A stretch of 32,000 nucleotides of DNA from Zygophlyctis sp. KS116 (taxonomy: Eukaryota > Fungi > Chytridiomycota): NCBI GenBank assembly GCA_054661495.1, contig BAAFSQ010000041.1:1-32000 (forward strand), in the 5' to 3' direction. A model generated the notes under the pieces. That model searched no databases and was not told the DNA's origin. It worked only from the letters and a program-made list of their open reading frames with translations. The position numbers and the translations under genes are program-made. Below are positions 2,912 to 32,000 of this stretch, piece by piece (position 1 is the first letter of the stretch; each line of letters starts with the position of its first letter).

Positions 2912-3799
2912 CTAAATCTTTAATGCCAAATTACGTGCCATTTTCTTTCTATATTCACAAACTTGATCACTAGAGAAATCCAAAGCCTCTCCCTTTGCAA
3001 TCCTATGAGCAGTTAAACATGTATGAACACCACATGAATTCCCATCAATCTGCAGTGGTGAGTCTCCTGCCTTTATACAAAATTTCAAATCCTCGATTGT
3101 CCTTAAAATCGGAGACTTTATTTGATCAATATTACTTAAATATTGCTCTGCTTCTTTTATCAGTATAGGCAATAATTGAGAGTAAACCTTTTTCAGCTTT
3201 TGAACTGAAGATCCTAAAGAATCATACTGAATGATTTCCATTTTTCCTATATAAATTACACCCAAAGACCAATGCGTATTTCCATGATTAATTGGAAATA
3301 TTACATGATCGTATTCAAATAAATACTTTTTGACTATTGCTTTCCTTAACCAACTTGAAACATTTAGTCCCCTTTCAAGATTTGTAAAAAAGAATGAATT
3401 TAGAAATATCGATTTAGGATATGCAGCTCCTAAAAGTTTGAAAAATGCATTAATCATTTCATCATTGAGCCAAGAGTTTGATTTTTCAAGAGTCTTTAAG
3501 AGCAATCTTGTAATTGGAATATTATCTAAATAAATCTGAACAAAATCCTCGAATAATGTAGATTTTGTATAATATTCTGATCGGATAGAATCTATAATTT
3601 CTTTTGATAGTCGACCTGAATTAAAAGATTGATAATCATCTGCAGAGTCTGTAGAGTCTGAATCAAGCGTTAGATCTATAATTTCCAAATCATCATGCGC
3701 CTTTGATTTTGTATTTACAACAACCATACTTAATTTACTCATTGATTCTGTTAACGGATCCCCATCAAAATCATTATCGCAAATATAAATCTTGTTCAT
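2912..3799 (-). CDS. Ulp1/SENP-family SUMO protease (peptidase C48)
   Basis: WLNDEMINAFF, FLNSFFF, IFPINHGNTHWSL (catalytic His), YDSL (Asp), QIDGNSCGVH (Gln/Cys). N-terminal IIDLT plus acidic tract resembles a SUMO-interacting motif. A short upstream exon (ATG 3857) is possible. Confidence 0.9.
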   Translation of the reverse strand: MNKIYICDNDFDGDPLTESMSKLSMVVVNTKSKAHDDLEIIDLTLDSDSTDSADDYQSFNSGRLSKEIIDSIRSEYYTKSTLFEDFVQIYLDNIPITRLLLKTLEKSNSWLNDEMINAFFKLLGAAYPKSIFLNSFFFTNLERGLNVSSWLRKAIVKKYLFEYDHVIFPINHGNTHWSLGVIYIGKMEIIQYDSLGSSVQKLKKVYSQLLPILIKEAEQYLSNIDQIKSPILRTIEDLKFCIKAGDSPLQIDGNSCGVHTCLTAHRIAKGEALDFSSDQVCEYRKKMARNLALKI

Positions 3800-4000: not shown

Positions 4001-5248
4001 ATGGAACCTTTGACCGATAGACCAAGCGGATATCCTGGAAATCTTACTCCAGAACAAACCAAAGTTTTTGCGGATTTCAAGACTGCACTCTCTCGCCGAT
4101 TCTCTTCTCCTACATATGATGATATTCCAGTAAGCTAAAGTTTGCATTAATCAAAGATTGCTTTATGGGGTGTTTCTCTTCCAAGAAGAACTGCAAAAGG
4201 TGATATAAATTCTGCTCAAGAAGCAATCTTGCTAAAGTTCTTGAGAGATGCAAGATGGAATCCAAATGAAGCTGCATCAAGAATTGCTGCTACTTTGAAA
4301 TGGAGAGTTGAATTTAAAATTGAAAACCTTAATAAGGAAAAGTGGAGTGAAGAATTAAGCAAGGCTTGTTTTGTGAATGGTGTGGATCGTAATGGTAATC
4401 CAATCATCTATACCAATTATGCTCTCATGTCAAAATTAGGATTATTATCTGATCCTGAAAAGTTTACTAGATGGAGAATTCATGTATTGGAAAAAGCTTT
4501 ACAAAAAGCTGATTTTGCTTCTGGTTGTGAAAAGATCACTCAAGTTTTTGATTGGACTGGAATAGGACTATTCCTTGATTCTAGAATCAATGATTCTAAT
4601 AGTAGATTAGCGTCTATTACTAAACTATATTATCCAGAATGCTTTGAATACAAGGCTCAAATTAATATTTCTGGATTGAAAGAGTTTCTTATCAAACTTG
4701 GAAACTTTTTTACTGGTGACTTGACTAGTAATTTAGCAATTACACCTGCAAATGTTCGTCCAGCATTATTGGAAATTATTTCTCCAGATTCTATTATTCC
4801 AGAATTTGGTGGTTTTGATCCTTTACCACCTGGAACTGAATCTGTAGTATTATGTCAAAGAGTTTTGGCTGGTAAAACATTTTCTCATGAAGCCCCTGCC
4901 AATAAAGGAGATGTTATACATTATTCATATATTTGCAAAGAAGGAGATATTACTGGATCTTATGGCTTTAAAAAAGAAGGAAAGAAATACTTGGATGATA
5001 AGAACCAAATTGCTAAAAAAGACAGTGGAAAAGGAATTTATGAAGTTGATCGTAAAGGTGCATTTGTAATGTCTTTTGCAAATGAAGATCCTACTGGTGA
5101 AAAAACAATTTATTTCCGTGCTTCAGTGGTTGTCAAGGATGACACTAAAGTAGACAAGAAAAAATCTAAAAAAGATAAAAAGGAAAATCGTAAATCTGCA
5201 GCTGTTACATCATCAGAAGCAGTACATGATTCTGAAAAGGAAACTTAA
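4001..5248 (+). CDS. Sec14/CRAL-TRIO lipid-transfer protein with C-terminal GOLD-like domain
   Basis: ATG 4001 MEPLTDRPSGYPGNLTPEQ; 27-nt intron 4130-4156; LLKFLRDARWN, LKWRVEF, GVDRNGNPI, YYPE, IIPEFGG; beta-rich C-terminal domain with a basic tail. Confidence 0.88.
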
Positions 5249-5300
5249 AATTAGAAAACAAAGAGAAACATCAATTTTTATGATTAGAGTTTGATTCTTG

Positions 5301-5354
5301 AGGTGAGCGTTCAGATCCAAAGGTGAGCGTTCAGATCTAAAGGTGAGCGTTCAG
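5301..5354 (+). repeat. 20-bp tandem repeat x2.7 upstream of SUMO
   Basis: aggtgagcgttcagatccaa / aggtgagcgttcagatctaa / aggtgagcgttcag, ending 20 bp before the SUMO ATG. Confidence 0.9.
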
Positions 5355-5374
5355 GTTCCTTACTGTTAAAAAGA

Positions 5375-5684
5375 ATGTCAGAGTCTCAACCAACTGAAGA
5401 GAAAAAAGTCGAACATATTAATCTTAAAGTCGTCGGACCTGATGGAGGAGAAGTCGCATTCAAGATCAAAAAGACTACAAACTTATCTAAACTCATGGAA
5501 GCATATGCTACTAAAACTGGACAAGTAATTTTATCTATTTAATGGAAAGAGAATAGCAGATGTAAGATTTCTTTATGAAGGAGAAAGACTCAAGGGACAT
5601 GAAAATCCGACTGATTTAGATATGGAAGATGGCGATCAAATTCAGGCTTTAATTGAACAACAGGGAGGTCAATACAGGATTTAG
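5375..5684 (+). CDS. SMT3: SUMO (small ubiquitin-like modifier) precursor
   Basis: [50 protein letters not shown] | 25-nt intron 5525-5549 | [44 protein letters not shown]. Diglycine plus 4-aa propeptide. Absent from the ORF track. Confidence 0.95.
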
Positions 5685-5830
5685 TATTGTTTTTAAGAAA
5701 TTCCTTTATTCTTTTATATTTCATTCTTGATGAGGATGGTACATAGCATGTAATGGTTGTTAAAGATCTGCACGTAAATGTGGCACTTTTTAGGCGCAAT
5801 TAAACGACTGAATTTCTCCGGATAACTGAT

Positions 5831-25465: not shown

Positions 25466-28400
25466 TTATTCTCTATATCGAATCACAATAACTTGTCCGA
25501 ATCCTGCGATGTAAATCAATGAGTCGTTTACAGGGAGATCCAGTGATGAGAGTGAGAGATGAGAAGGTATTGGAAAAATGCCAGTCAATGTTGGATTTTC
25601 TATCAATCTACCAGCTTCCCTTAATTTCCATACTCGTAATAAATTATCCGCAGTTAATGTTACTAAATTTAGCCCATTGTGTGATATTTTCCAGAATCTT
25701 ATTATTGAGCCTTCATGCGGTAATGAGCAGAGACGTTTTCTAGTGGGAGATAAAGCAAGTATATTTATGAAGCCGTTTTTTACATCAATCATACGTTCGC
25801 TTAAATGATCTATTGCACTCCTTGTAGTACTTCCATCGTAAAAAAGATACTGAGTTTCCTTATCTATCCAAAAACTACTCAAGTTTTCGGCAGACTTAAA
25901 ACCAACTTTAGATGACCAATACATGTTATCAACTATAATAGAATCTGATAAGAGCAGCGCACAGGATATTTTACTATTTCGTTCAAAGATTAGCATATCT
26001 TGTAGTGCGTCCCTCTTACTATCATGTAAAAATAACTCTCTTCCAGTCCAGCAGTTTAAGACAACAGCAGACTTGTCAATTCTAATACAAACTCTTTCAA
26101 AATCGGTAAATATTGGGTTTCGGGGTATAAATGAAACTTGTGCCTTTGAATATAGCTCAGTCAGTTCCCATGTTCCATTAGCGTTTGTAAATTTCCAACA
26201 TGTAAACATATCGTCCGAAATCGCACCAAGCCAATAGAGTTTTCGTGCCTTACAATACTGTATCCATATCTGACTATATACGTTTGAATCTGGGTTTTTC
26301 AAAAGAATCTTTTGCAAGTATAAAGAGTACACTACCAAGTTTGAATCAGAAATCCCAAAAATAATCGCTTCATTTGGATCAAAAGCACAAATATCAAATT
26401 TGAATTCCAAAGACAGAGATTGTGTTACTTCTCCCCCCTTCCACAATACAATATTCCCTTTCTCGTCCAATGACAGTGCATCATATATTGTAGAATCATC
26501 CTTTAAAATTCTGGTCGAATTACAGTATAGTAATATAATATTTGATCCATTATGAGGATTGACTGAATGCTTCTTGTTCTTTTTAGCCATAATTGATGAA
26601 TTTATATCACACATCATAATTGTTGTTTCGGCCGCTAAGAAAATTCTTTCTTTGCCCCTTGAGCTTGCAGTACATATTGAACTCAATTTTTGGCCCATTG
26701 AAGCGGTTGGAATCTTGTCGATAAGTCTTCCGCTATGAATATGAAATACATATATTTCTCCATTTAGAGACGTGCAGTAAAGCATGGATTCATCAATGGA
26801 GAATGAAATATCCTCAAAATGCAGGCCATCTGTTTTGATCAAGGAAATCCGCGAATGATTGTCGATTTTCCAAATCATAATATTCAAATCAGCCAAACTA
26901 GCAGCAAACATATCCTTGCTGACGGAAAAACAGGCTGTGGAATTTTCTTTCAGATCATTGCATTTAAAACGACAAATTTCGGACATTGTGAAAGCGCCGA
27001 GGATAATCGCACCACCAAAACTCTCGGAAAGAATCGCAACTTTGATACCATCATTTGATTTAGCCAAAATCCGATCGCATCTATGAAGCCTTTGAAATGT
27101 TTTTGATGAGCCTATTGACTTGTTTTCCTTTTCAGTGAATCCAGAAAAGGAGACAAACTCTAGAGCCTTATTGTCGAGGTTATTTCTCCAAAGTCCGGAT
27201 TTATCATTTGAAAAAAATATATCGGATACGAATCCTGAACCCGGGATTCTTACAATAAGCTTTTTGGATAAGAGAGAAAAGATTGTTATTTCACCCGATG
27301 CACTGGAGTACGCAATCTTGTCAGAAGGAGGCAAATTAAATGCGCAATGTGCTATTTCACCTACAGGAAATTGAGACCCCAGGATCACATCAATTTTATG
27401 GTATGAATCAATATCCCACGCATTCACAGATCCATCATCTGAAACGGATATACAGCATTTACCCAAGGCTCTTAATGGCAACGCTGTTACAAAGATGATT
27501 CTGGAAGAATGATTTCCCATAGTTAGCCTATCAGGAGTATCGGATTGCAAAGATGTAGTAATGATTGAAGAGGTAATGATGTCTGTATGCCTTTGAAACT
27601 CCATTGCATATTCTTTAACTAAAGAACATGAACTATCCGGCAAACTGATTGCTAGACAAAACGATAGATCAGGAAAACGGCGAAAAATATCATAGTTTCT
27701 TTCGACAAATAAAGAAAAATGATTGAGTCGGTTTCGAGATATTTCATCAGCTTGTATGGCAGCGATCTTTCTTGATTGTGAAAAGAAAAACTTGAGATAG
27801 CTTCCAGAACCATTTTTAAACATCAACTGAATAAACGACAAAGAGCATAAGACTTGAGTAAGTGTGCTAGCTTTGACTTCAGTATCTAGAAAATGAAATA
27901 ATATGTCTTGAGCGCGATTTAAGTCCGATCCATTCCACACATCTAGTTTACTTGGATCACATTGACCCCAAAAAAAGTTTGCTATTCGTTCATTGAACCG
28001 TTTAGCTAAATGATCTTCCATCAAGTAGCGGTTTTTGATGTACTCAGCAAGCACGTTACTGAACAATACGAGCCTTCCAGATGGCTTGCGAATCAGCAAA
28101 TATTCAATTTTGTGATATATAAAGATCCATTCCATCTGATCAATCTTGAGTATATTCACGATTTCGCTTTCTAGAGTACCATTTTTTGAAAAATAAATAA
28201 GAAGAAATATTTCGCTCAAAATTTTGTTAAAGCGGCAAGATATACCACTTATGCAGTAATCTAAAAGTCCAAAAGTTGTGTCTGGTAGAGAATCAACAAT
28301 TTCAGCAATATCAGACGAGCTCTTTGCTGCCAATATAGCTGCAGATAGTTTTAAAAACAATATTTGATCCCCCTGCTTATTTGAAACAATTCTGGAAAGT

Positions 28401-31400
28401 TGGGTTTCCTCAGCTTGCGGAACCTTTGTTGACAAAAATTCCATACTTTCCTGTCTATTTAAACTTTGAATGGGCATAAATATGGAGTTTTCAAATCGTG
28501 CTTCCATATCCCGATAAAATGCTTCTTTGGAACTAGATGAGACAACAAAGCATATATTTTTCCAAGTTTCACTATTGAGATCTCTGACCTGTGGGATCCA
28601 TGAGTAAATGGGTCCTTCAATACATTGTAATTTGTGAATATCATCGATAATTATCAGTATCCTAAAGCCCAAAAATGAAACTTTTTCTAAAAGATGTAAA
28701 TAGTCATCCCAATAATTATTTCCCATTTTTCCAAAATGTATTTGCCGATCTTGCAGGTTCTGTAATAGTTGATAACAAAAAGTTTGCGCAATCCCCGAAA
28801 CATCATTAGAATCATATGAAGCATCCATTAAATTATTCAACACAATGTACTTTCCAGAATATTTTTGAATAAGAGTTTTCAAAATTGTCGTTTTGCCTTT
28901 CCCAATCTCTTCGCTAAACAAACAAAATATCTTTGATGGATTGGGATGGTGATGGTATTCTTGGGAGTCCAAAAAGTCATCGATTTGTTCCAGAATTTTT
29001 TTAGAAGATGGCAAACAAACGATAGAGGAATCTTCGACCATTTTACATTTTGAATTCAATTGCATCCACTGTCTTAATTCATTCATAAGTTTAGTCCCAA
29101 ATGCATCCATTTTGTTTAGGATCACTTTATTATCTTCAATATGGGAAAAACTGCATGTATATTGAATATTCTTGAAAGACAAAGCCCGGACTTCATTTTT
29201 GAGAACTAAAAGATTTCTATCTTCGATTTCATCAGTATTTTCAAAAACCCATTGATAAGCCTTTGGCACTGAACGAAGAAATGAATTATCACGTATAAAC
29301 ACTAGTGGCTGCACATTCATATTTTCCAAGGTTTGAATTAATCTTCTCCATAGTAACAGACTATTCTTATCGTTTTTCTCCAACACGCCGCCAAAAATTA
29401 ATATATGTAAATTAGAGCGCCGAATAAGATTGTCCAGAGTGGAGTGAATATCTTCGTCATCCAAGGCTGTAAGTTTTTCAAATGAGATTTCATATAACTG
29501 AGCACTTATACCCCGCTCTTCTAATTCCGTCCTTAATTTAGGGAACTCCAACATAATCCAATTTTTCTCATTATAAGTGTCAATCGTAGAAAACACTGTT
29601 ATAGTGAAAAATGTAGATATTCCTTGCGAAGAATTATTCTGCTTTTGAGCAGTAACGTTTTGTGAAATACCCAAGATATTTTTGGGGGATAATCTTAATC
29701 CCATCTCGACTGCAGAATCAATTGAGGCTGCTGGTACTTCAATTCGAGACATAGAATCATCAGTGATAGAATTGCCAAAAACAATTTCTCGGATATTCTG
29801 GTAAGTGTCCGAAGTGGAAAATCGAACATTCTCTCCATTCACTGATGTTTTAAGATTTGTAGGCTTGAAATAAATGAACACAGATGGTATATTTAGAGAT
29901 GGAATCAGACCATTTCCAAGTACCATATTCCTTATCTCTAGAATAGTTTTATTCCTATCAAATGATTGTGTATAAAAGCATTGAATCGAATCTGCCGAAA
30001 TCTTATGCTGTAGTACATTATCAATTTGCGAACAGTGCAAAAGCGTTTTAAAATCGAATAGTCCCGCATCAAAGGACTTACAAAGGCGAGAATCGGTGCA
30101 TAAGAATAACTCTAAAGATTGTAGATTTTTCGAATCAGTGAAGTAGTGATCAGCCCTTAATGGATGCAGCATTCCTAGTATTTCTTGCCGTTTTGTTTTA
30201 TTTTGAAGTGTTAATAACCCAAGCCAATATTCGCATGACACTTTATTCATTAATATAGACCAAAAGTAATCAGATAAAATGATTTCGTCTTCTTTTAAAT
30301 GCCGAGCGTCTACATATTGCAATTCTTTAATGAGTGTTAAATATGTAGAGAAGGGTATTTTATAATCTGATCTACAGCTAGCGGCCCAATTTTCCTGCGG
30401 GATAGCTGATGACCGTAGATGAAGTTTTAGTGTATTTTTCCAGAGATCCAAATATGTGGTCTTTGTAATTCTGTCAGCCGAAATGTTTAAATTTTGCAAG
30501 GTGTTAATAAATTTTTTCCAGTTACTTTCGAATACAGCATCTATTTCTTCTTCAATCAAGGAGTTGCTTATTTGACGAGTATAAATTCCGGAAATGATCA
30601 TTTTTTTAATGTGTGGGAACGTGAGCTTCTTTTTACTACACTCTACGTATAATCGATGAACCAAAGATAAATCAAATTCATCATAGCTTATATTCCCTTC
30701 AGAAATTTTGAGCATAGAAGACAAAATATCAAAATGGGATTTTAAAATGACCCCAAAAAATAAAGCATTTCCTTCCTTCGCCTCTGGTGAGTTAGATAAC
30801 TGCTCAAGATGCTTTTCGTAATTGTCACTAGTATTTAGAGTATAATAAATTACGTTTCCATATCCTCAAGAAAATCATTTGAGCATATAATATTAGCAAA
30901 TATGTCATTTGAAAGTAGATACTGCATTTGATATGGGCATATAAACCAAATTTTACATTGACCGCTGATATTTCGAAACCTTCGTACTAGAGTGGGAATT
31001 ATATTAATCCATTGGCTATCTACCAAGACATATACCCAATCACCACTCACTATAGCAGATTCAATTTTTTCAATCCATTTCCCTAAAGAATTATTTAATT
31101 TAATTACCATGCTTGTCTTCATCAGTTAAGCTGATCAGCATAACGTGATCTTCCTCTTTCATTTTAAAAACAGCATTTAAAAATGAAATAATCCCCATCG
31201 GCCTAAAAGTAACTATTAATATAATGCTTTGAGAACGATCTGATAAAAACTGCATCCAGCTTTCAACAGTACCCCGCTTTACCAAAGAATTTGATATTAA
31301 ATCAGATACATGATTAAAAGACTTTTGATCACACTTTCCCATCGAAAAAAATTGAAATAATGCTTTTTCAAAATTAGTAAATTTACGATTGAGCTTTTCA

Positions 31401-32000
31401 ATCGCAGTAGCATATTTTTTAGGATTTTCCAAATATAATTTCAGTGCAAGAATAAGAGGGAACTCCTGATGCTTATTAGGTAGGCATTTTAAAATCTGAG
31501 ATTTAAAAATTAAGAGAGCTCACCTGAGCGTATTCTTCTTTAGGCGTATTGGTTCGACGCCTTAGGACTGTTAATAGAGCACCTTCGTAATCTGTTGTTA
31601 TAAAACCATCAAACAAAAGTTTTCGTATCCCAATCACCAGCGAAATATATTGAAAATCAAAAGAAGTAAACCTATTAACCAGTTCCTTTAAAATAATAGC
31701 GAGGGATTCAAGGAGAATATTATCGATATTTTGATCTATTGTAGTCAGTGATTTTTGTAAAGATTCATCAAAAATCTTTAGTAAATACCCAATTTGTATC
31801 TGATTTAGTTTTTTTAGGTCCTTCATATCACTTATATCCCTAAAAACAGATGCAAAGAATTTTGTTAATTTAATGAAAGAATCATGCATATATTTGCTTT
31901 CCACCTCCAGATTTACAAGAGTCGACAGTTGACTATCTTTCTGAAATGTCCTTCTGTTTAAACGAATAATTTCATGACGCAATTCATCCTTTATATTTTG
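25466..32000 (-). CDS. Giant multidomain protein: degenerate dynein-heavy-chain-like region + DUF4062-like + NACHT/STAND ATPase + WD40-like repeats; 5' end outside window
   Basis: Three introns (31496-31523, 31083-31107, 30828-30853) join four ORF-track pieces into one frame. P-loop GKGKTT, Walker B ILIIIDD, TEP1-like VFST..NEK...FPKLR..RG and FIRDNSFLRSVP, WD-like units (HSSRI..SVSDDGSVNAWD, LVTLTADNLLRVWK). Confidence 0.8.

Follow-up and report, generated by a model that had tools for sequence, protein, structure and literature searches.

Does the minus strand of the first 32,000 nt of contig BAAFSQ010000041.1 of the chytrid Zygophlyctis sp. KS116 encode a single protein in which a degenerate dynein heavy chain (DHC) runs on into a STAND ATPase and WD40 propellers, and, if so, what kind of protein is it? 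A first-pass annotation of the window (the whole stretch analyzed, C41:1-32000; the contig measures 56 kb and the assembly 12.7 Mb) had read such a fusion, with a TEP1-like module, and had taken its architecture to be undescribed. The fusion in one gene was borne out, and so was the TEP1-like character of the module, which has TEP1- and TROVE-type relatives and an Apaf-1-like predicted fold. Judged by its sequence, the window gene is an ortholog of the chytrid class-10 DHC. Its predicted product is a whole, divergent dynein heavy chain that retains a linker, AAA1-AAA4, a stalk, AAA5, and AAA6. The domain order is a short tail, the linker, AAA1-AAA4, the stalk with its microtubule-binding domain, a lineage-specific F-box insert, AAA5, AAA6 with its lid, a DUF4062-like domain, the STAND ATPase, and the WD40 region.

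Gene model and dynein domains

The table-11 listing of open reading frames (ORFs) contained a 1,752-codon ORF on the minus strand (25466-30724) and three shorter open frames up to 32000. When every GT..AG pair was tested at each frame change, three in-phase introns were found in the window, at 31523-31496 (28 nt), 31107-31083 (25 nt), and 30853-30828 (26 nt). Their removal left 6,456 nt, or 2,152 codons including the stop, in agreement with the three tiny introns and the frame of more than 2,100 codons of the first-pass annotation. The upstream extension of the gene model that it had proposed was also carried out and yielded the whole heavy chain, up to position 43352. The full gene (C41:43352-25466, minus strand) has 14 exons and 13 introns and begins with an ATG at 43352, 11 kb upstream of the window, which therefore holds its 3' third. 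At 17,541 nt, the spliced sequence is a multiple of 3 and corresponds to 5,846 codons plus the stop, all open. All 13 introns are 23-29 nt long, in phase, and AG-ended, and most begin with GTA; introns of this size are unusual for a fungus. The short in-phase intron was unique at most junctions, and more than one choice was available at four junctions (equally in-frame alternatives are 33986-33949 versus 33986-33964 and 34388-34361 versus 34385-34361). The ATG at 43352 is a plausible start because the N-terminal MKWEEA resembles RWEQAE, which is conserved near the N-terminus of the orthologs.

The features of the window portion, with the evidence for each, are as follows.

31524..32000, minus strand: window part of exon 11 (the exon reaches contig position 32083), dynein ring between AAA5 and AAA6; in-phase open frame
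31496..31523, minus strand: intron GTGAG..CAG, 28 nt; the sole short GT..AG in-phase link, three others being 40-58 nt
31108..31495, minus strand: exon 12, N-terminal half of the AAA6 large domain; alignments, hhalign, and profile match
31193-31225, minus strand: strand IILIVT (= FILSPG) in exon 12
31112-31135, minus strand: ISLTDEDK (= ISLGQGQ) in exon 12
31083..31107, minus strand: intron GTAAT..TTTAG, 25 nt; seen spliced out in RNA contigs
30854..31082, minus strand: exon 13, AAA6 core; BLASTP to four orthologs with E 3e-6 to 3e-13, and hhalign to canonical AAA6
31018-31044, minus strand: GDWVYVLVD in exon 13
30934-30957, minus strand: CKIWFICP in exon 13
30828..30853, minus strand: intron GTAAT..ACTAG, 26 nt; in-phase GT..AG
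30437..30827, minus strand: start of exon 14, helical AAA6 lid; hhalign columns and AlphaFold2 (AF2) helices
30731-30763, 30668-30691, and 30563-30598, minus strand: AAA6 lid motifs, respectively FFH-like, YDEFDL, and IYTRQ
29615..30436, minus strand: divergent segment where the orthologs have the dynein C-terminal domain; position relative to the orthologs' Dynein_C
29042..29614, minus strand: DUF4062-like alpha/beta domain; AF2 model and Pfam matches of homologs
27512..29041, minus strand: STAND NTPase with nucleotide-binding, helical, and winged-helix domains; AF2, Foldseek, and homolog alignment
28886-28903, minus strand: Walker A GKGKT of the STAND NTPase
28637-28657, minus strand: Walker B IIIDD of the STAND NTPase
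25469..27514, minus strand: WD40 beta-propellers, ~680 amino acids, enough for two propellers; Pfam beta-propeller families
25466..25468, minus strand: stop codon of the 5,846-codon gene

Contigs of 151 nt that were 100% identical to the gene within exons 12 and 13 were present in two runs, belonging to two studies, of lake-water metatranscriptomes, and RNA-library contigs matched exon 12 with 100% identity at 31107-31246 and 31273-31422. Contigs ended at both borders of the intron at 31083-31107, one of them covering 31107-31246 and another stopping at 31083. The 11 extra letters of the contig covering 31107-31246 equal the reverse complement of the first bases of exon 13, indicating that this intron is spliced as predicted. 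The RNA evidence is thin, since it consists of contigs of RNA libraries, and none of the metatranscriptome contigs covered 25466-30800. A separate 263-nt metatranscriptome contig touched 30871-30891 and 28817-28839 (stretches of 21-23 nt whose flanks are unrelated), most likely by chance rather than as a joint.

This gap in RNA coverage, together with the poorly conserved segment at 29615-30436 and its low-confidence fold, would fit a gene-model artefact in which two adjacent genes are read as one, or a decaying gene. On the other hand, a single unbroken exon of 1,786 codons spans the AAA6 lid and the entire STAND-WD40 unit, every codon of the gene is open, spliced RNA exists, and the same domain order is found in five independently annotated genomes; the single-exon argument was likewise made by Kollmar 2016 (PMC5100056). 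We therefore consider an artefact or a pseudogene to be extremely improbable.

All searches were made exon by exon, with single exons as queries. Exon 4 aligned with the DHC_N2 region of the orthologs, exon 5 matched the Pfam families AAA_6 (3e-29), AAA_7 (2e-17), AAA_5, and Dynein_AAA_lid, and exon 6 matched the dynein stalk family (MT, 2e-9). Against the solved dyneins of the PDB, exon 5 gave E-values down to 7e-30, the axonemal types being the best, and the AAA1 part was closest to single-headed inner-arm dyneins (DNAH6, 9e-17, versus cytoplasmic dynein 1, 3e-8). The stalk exon matched the stalks of nine canonical dynein loci of the same genome, down to 1e-17, and canonical dyneins only. 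The tail exon and a tail profile matched only the start of the linker in the PDB and no solved dynein tail.

The first-pass annotation had proposed a dynein profile check of 30400-32000, in which single-sequence Pfam and PDB searches failed but an ortholog profile and hhalign succeeded. Pfam searches of the window exons one by one found no dynein family, phmmer of exons 10 and 12 found no dynein in the PDB, and a six-frame genome search with Pfam Dynein_heavy (PF03028) returned 14 matches on 12 contigs, none of them on C41 even at E 10. A profile built from four orthologs, however, was matched colinearly by exon 10 (12-320), exon 11 (447-557), exon 12 (666-760), exon 13 (764-829), and the start of exon 14 (871-943), with E-values of 1.5e-9 for exon 11, 1.2e-3 for exon 12 (weak, yet colinear), and 5e-18 for exon 13. 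The ortholog profile of the region after the F-box in turn matched PDB dyneins in AAA5 (2.9e-13) and the C-terminal domain (6e-12). An AAA6-only family profile found nothing relevant in the PDB, and AAA6 of the window gene was recognized only by hhalign against the genome's own canonical dyneins: the family AAA6-plus-lid profile, which takes in exon 13 and the end of exon 12 and was aligned end to end, matched four of them with Prob 85.4 and E 5.8e-6 over 207 colinear columns. Taken together, the colinearity of the exons, the PDB matches of the profile in AAA5 and the C-terminal domain, and the hhalign match of AAA6 and its lid support the assignment of the window part to dynein.

Three of the four dynein motif matches that had been recognized by eye were recovered by hhalign, namely GDWV.. 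with GxWxxLxNxHL, KIWFICP with FRLWLT, and FFH/YDEFDL/IYTRQ with FFH..FNxSDF..YGGR. The fourth was misplaced: IVTFRPMG, previously compared with LRPDR, aligned to the AAA6 strand FILSPGxDP. The start of the AAA6 lid (exon 14 residues 1-130) was modeled as helices (AF2, predicted local distance difference test [pLDDT] 55-83), and the lid region 30437..30827 was 48% identical to the metagenome fragment P0002. Dynein_C was matched in the orthologs by Pfam (P0004, 8e-9; P0005, 3e-4) and also in the PDB, and no match to it was detectable by Pfam or the ortholog profile in the corresponding segment of the window copy (29615-30436). The AF2 model of exon 14 residues 1-400 had a mean pLDDT of 42.6, with the segment 29615-30436 below 50.

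Two further loci of this genome resemble aberrant dyneins. C123:26100-27650 encodes a second divergent dynein with a degenerate AAA6, in which LILTGCDRNS replaces WVxLQNCHL and YGGR is absent; it passes the Pfam Dynein_heavy cut-off (44.6 bits) and may belong to the chytrid-specific class 17 of Kollmar 2016. C134:10751-11002, within an open frame of 1,547 codons, matches Dynein_heavy weakly and below the threshold (24.9 bits) and could be another aberrant dynein.

Chytrid orthologs and class-10 dyneins

When exon 14 residues 1-1100 served as the query of an exhaustive HMMER search, 76 proteins were recovered, and the giant ones among them were all from chytrids, with one ortholog per species. 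Four giants of 6,161-6,579 amino acids, from Gorgonomyces haynaldii, Phlyctochytrium arcticum, Spizellomyces sp. 'palustris', and Borealophlyctis nickersoniae, were matched at residues ~4,900-5,800. A fifth full-length ortholog was SPPG_06767 of S. punctatus, which carries the UniRef name "F-box domain-containing protein", and fragmented models were found in Batrachochytrium dendrobatidis and Rhizophlyctis rosea. The fusion for which a search of chytrid proteomes had been advised is therefore present in five full-length orthologs, with fragments in two more species. Along the giants, Pfam places DHC_N2, AAA_6, AAA_7, AAA_8, MT, F-box, Dynein_C, NACHT/NPHP3_N, and WD40 propellers, in this order. 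In BLASTP, the exons large enough to score (3-6, 8-11, 13, and 14) were colinear with the orthologs at 19-40% identity, depending on the exon. Exons 7-10 (~720 amino acids) are conserved within the family only, and recognizable AAA5 similarity begins ~200 profile positions after the F-box. No ctenophore protein was among the 76 hits; in the Mnemiopsis genome preprint, the legend to Fig. 3B names DHC_N as one of the domains that accompany NACHT.

Class 10 was defined by Kollmar 2016 (Mol Biol Evol 33:3249; PMC5100056) from Chytridiomycota and Neocallimastigomycota only. Its traits are a unique region at AAA5 and a C-terminal WD40 tail of ~1,500 amino acids, which is not homologous to intermediate chains, and in all class-10 genes reported there AAA5 to the C-terminus form one exon, a fact taken to exclude annotation artefacts (PMC5100056). 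In the window gene we found a dynein motor domain, a long unique region at AAA5, a WD40-bearing C-terminal tail (exon 14 residues ~400 to 1786), and chytrid orthology, and the gene is colinear with the proteins of Spizellomyces, Batrachochytrium, Gorgonomyces, Phlyctochytrium, and Borealophlyctis. It differs from the published class in that four tiny introns (exons 10-14) interrupt the stretch between AAA5 and the C-terminus, the part from the AAA6 lid to the stop codon being one exon, and from its class-10 orthologs in being very divergent, the AAA1 P-loop also having been lost. SPPG_06767 may be the sequence that Kollmar named SppDHC10. Because the class was catalogued in 2016, the dynein-WD40 fusion is not a discovery, and the window gene is a further, very divergent member. 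The idea of an undescribed architecture thus fell to the very outcome that the first-pass annotation had named in advance as speaking against it, an already catalogued family.

The STAND-WD40 unit, the motor ATP sites, and the F-box

Sequence reading and structural models agreed with the positions given in the first pass for the P-loop, the DUF4062-like domain, and the propellers. The AF2 model of the module (exon 14 residues 395-1105) had a pLDDT of 81 and a predicted template modeling (TM) score (pTM) of 0.79. The DUF4062-like domain, residues 10-200 of this model, consisted of beta-alpha-beta units with pLDDT 76-93. Over 17 aligned homologs, Pfam matched NACHT in 13, NPHP3_N in 13, HTH_NWD1 in 9, DUF4062 (PF13271) in 6, and APAF1_C in 4, and the orthologs P0005, P0006, P0008, and P0001 passed the NACHT threshold (PF05729). 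In the same 17 homologs, Gly248 and Gly250 of the STAND Walker A and the Walker B Asp were invariant, and Lys251 was nearly so (at least 90%). In Foldseek, the best match of the STAND model was ADP-bound Apaf-1 (1z6t; E 1.3e-10, TM 0.46/0.56, 14% identity), followed by plant nucleotide-binding leucine-rich repeat (NLR) proteins (RPP1 and NRC proteins) and Avs3, with E-values of 1e-10 to 1e-6 over the set. The WD40 region (exon 14 residues 1105-1747) matched many Pfam beta-propeller families, with E-values down to 7e-10.

Outside the dyneins, the module is closest to proteins that bear the name telomerase protein component 1 or TROVE-domain protein. Like TEP1 and the NWD1/NPHP3-type STAND proteins, which gave the best non-dynein sequence matches, the unit combines a DUF4062-like domain, a NACHT-type NTPase, helical and winged-helix domains, and WD40 repeats. 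Unlike TEP1, it has no TROVE domain (no match on the 12 exons scanned, namely exons 1, 3, and 5-14) and no vault or telomerase context, and it stands at the C-terminus of a dynein. On its sequence, the protein is a relative of the C-terminal half of TEP1 and not TEP1 itself. It shares with Apaf-1 the modeled fold of nucleotide-binding, first helical, winged-helix, and second helical domains (NBD-HD1-WHD-HD2) followed by WD40 propellers, and differs from it in lacking a CARD domain and in the low identity (14%). In a quick tree, rooted only at the midpoint and with the window row on a long branch, a fully supported branch set the chytrid dynein-linked modules apart from the TEP1-like ones, a grouping that fits one acquisition of the module.

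The structural proximity to Apaf-1, plant NLRs, and bacterial Avs proteins, and the combination of NACHT with repeats, the usual layout of a sensor, suggest an NLR-like innate immune or non-self sensor, in which the STAND-WD40 unit would detect pathogens or damage and the dynein and F-box would serve as an effector or transport platform. However, the gene is single-copy and its module has no paralog in this assembly, each species has one ortholog rather than a variable expanded family, the nearest relatives are of the TEP1 type and not immune NLRs, and the chytrid STAND modules form one group apart from the TEP1-like ones in the quick tree. A sensor of this kind is therefore unlikely in our judgment.

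The ATP sites of the motor were compared in the window copy and four orthologs. At AAA1, the Walker B Asp-Glu was replaced in all five sequences (QN, TH, RN, RQ, and QN), the alignment to DNAH6 placing FDEFNRI opposite RFQNLDL, and the Walker A (GPAGTGKT) was absent from the window copy, with GKT kept in the four orthologs. The P-loop of AAA2 was kept and that of AAA4 was lost in five of five. At AAA3, both the P-loop and a DD form of Walker B were retained (FVDDIQF in the window copy and FVDDLNM in the Gorgonomyces ortholog); we take FVDDIQF to be the usual form in axonemal dyneins. By these alignments, none of the members compared retains a live main catalytic site; with the catalytic Walker B pair of AAA1 gone from all five, the protein probably does not work as a motor. 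DNHD1 and other 'ghost' dyneins are presumably similar in being divergent and taxonomically restricted, with degenerate ATP sites, and we know of no F-box or STAND-WD40 extension in DNHD1-type dyneins. These belong to other classes (11 to 13) in Kollmar's scheme.

Might the protein nevertheless be a working axonemal dynein arm, in which the WD40 region substitutes for an intermediate chain, an idea raised by Kollmar 2016 (PMC5100056), and the STAND and F-box parts are minor regulatory additions? The best PDB matches were axonemal, with the inner-arm DNAH6 on top for AAA1, the AAA3 Walker B has the axonemal form assumed above, the class is restricted to flagellated fungi, and all the new dynein classes were proposed to be axonemal from tail homology (PMC5100056). 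Set against this, the AAA1 Asp-Glu pair needed for the power stroke is replaced throughout and the Walker A of the window copy is gone, the WD40 region is not homologous to intermediate chains (PMC5100056) and belongs to a STAND unit of the TEP1/Apaf-1 type, and the tail profile had no match to solved dynein tails. We consider a functional arm of this kind improbable.

The F-box lies in exon 9, between the stalk and AAA5, and scored well above the Pfam cut-offs (PF12937, 45.4 bits against a cut-off of 24.3, E 6.6e-12; PF00646, 40.9 against 20.5). Pfam matches to the F-box are on record for three of the five orthologs, and its LP and W residues were conserved in all aligned sequences, save P0008, which lacks the stretch holding the first W. 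In that deposited model (Borealophlyctis nickersoniae KAJ3292987.1, ~3760-3790), the second half of the F-box is missing and the flanks align, which looks like a mispredicted intron. Elsewhere in the genome, the F-box exon had only weak F-box-level matches, on C92, C48, and C11, and no connection to a small F-box/stalk gene at another place in this genome emerged.

A short two-exon Skp1 gene of ~140 amino acids is located on C139 (852-1299 of the excerpt L025, minus strand); its 25-nt intron is of the same type as those of the dynein gene. A second Skp1-like locus on C126 has a C-terminal domain split between two frames. When the F-box was modeled in complex with the C-terminal exon of Skp1 from this same genome, the score was 0.47, against 0.00 for the best of three controls, which lends weak support to an interaction. 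In the calibration of this test, 51 of 78 solved complexes and 2 of 108 mismatched pairs attained the mark; only 5 of those 78 did so with a score of 0.60 or below, as did all 4 passing mismatches. The runs agreed in at least 86% of the contacts, with a partner pLDDT of at least 67.

Proposed role of the class-10 protein

The combination of a dead AAA1 site, a conserved F-box, and a STAND-WD40 unit leads us to propose a non-motile, microtubule-docked scaffold that recruits an SCF ubiquitin ligase under the control of a nucleotide switch, a proposal that we think has about an even chance of being right. The protein would no longer walk, and its dynein body and stalk would tether it to microtubules or the axoneme. 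Skp1-Cul1 (the SCF ubiquitin ligase) would be brought in by the F-box, and the C-terminal STAND-WD40 unit would receive a ligand or substrate under nucleotide gating, in the manner of Apaf-1 and other STAND proteins. The pairing of an F-box motif with WD40 propellers in one polypeptide recalls the SCF receptors of the FBXW7/Cdc4 type, and the F-box itself may resemble that of FBXW7.

Several points weigh against this proposal. Unlike the F-box of classical F-box/WD40 receptors such as the FBXW7/Cdc4 type, the one here is buried in the dynein ring, ~2,000 residues upstream of the propellers. The Skp1 test was a weak pass, made with a 74-residue piece of Skp1 (exon 2 only), and F-box/Skp1 complexes are in the training memory of the model. 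The window copy's own NACHT and DUF4062 Pfam scores were below threshold, and AAA_22 alone appeared, at 5e-5, below its cut-off. Because 25466-30800 had no RNA coverage, an internal promoter might give a separate STAND-WD40 product. The P-loop and DD Walker B kept in AAA3, and the AAA1 P-loop kept in four orthologs, would allow some nucleotide-driven movement. Finally, a link of the gene to ubiquitination or flagellar retraction is a prediction from its sequence.

Within this proposal, a plausible job would be the marking of axonemal or microtubule proteins for proteasomal removal as the zoospore draws in its flagellum. Chytrids break down the internalized axoneme partly by way of the proteasome (Venard et al. 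2020, as cited in PMC11772885), which makes axoneme disposal a candidate role. The most specific version, in which a dead inner-arm dynein has been re-used as an address label for the proteasome-dependent dismantling of the retracted flagellum and class 10 consists of SCF receptors gated in the manner of Apaf-1, is doubtful and is offered as a long shot.

For the class as a whole, our analysis adds a conserved F-box within the "unique region" and resolves the "WD40 tail" into an entire STAND ATPase, of the TEP1/Apaf-1 type, together with its propellers. The terms F-box, NACHT domain, and P-loop occur 0 times in Kollmar 2016 (PMC5100056), and literature searches found no paper linking chytrid dyneins with an F-box, NACHT, or DUF4062; this domain re-annotation of class 10 appears to be unpublished. 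The re-annotation makes the function of the class testable, with a microtubule-anchored, switchable ubiquitin-ligase adaptor as the hypothesis; among the species that carry the gene, Spizellomyces punctatus can be transformed.

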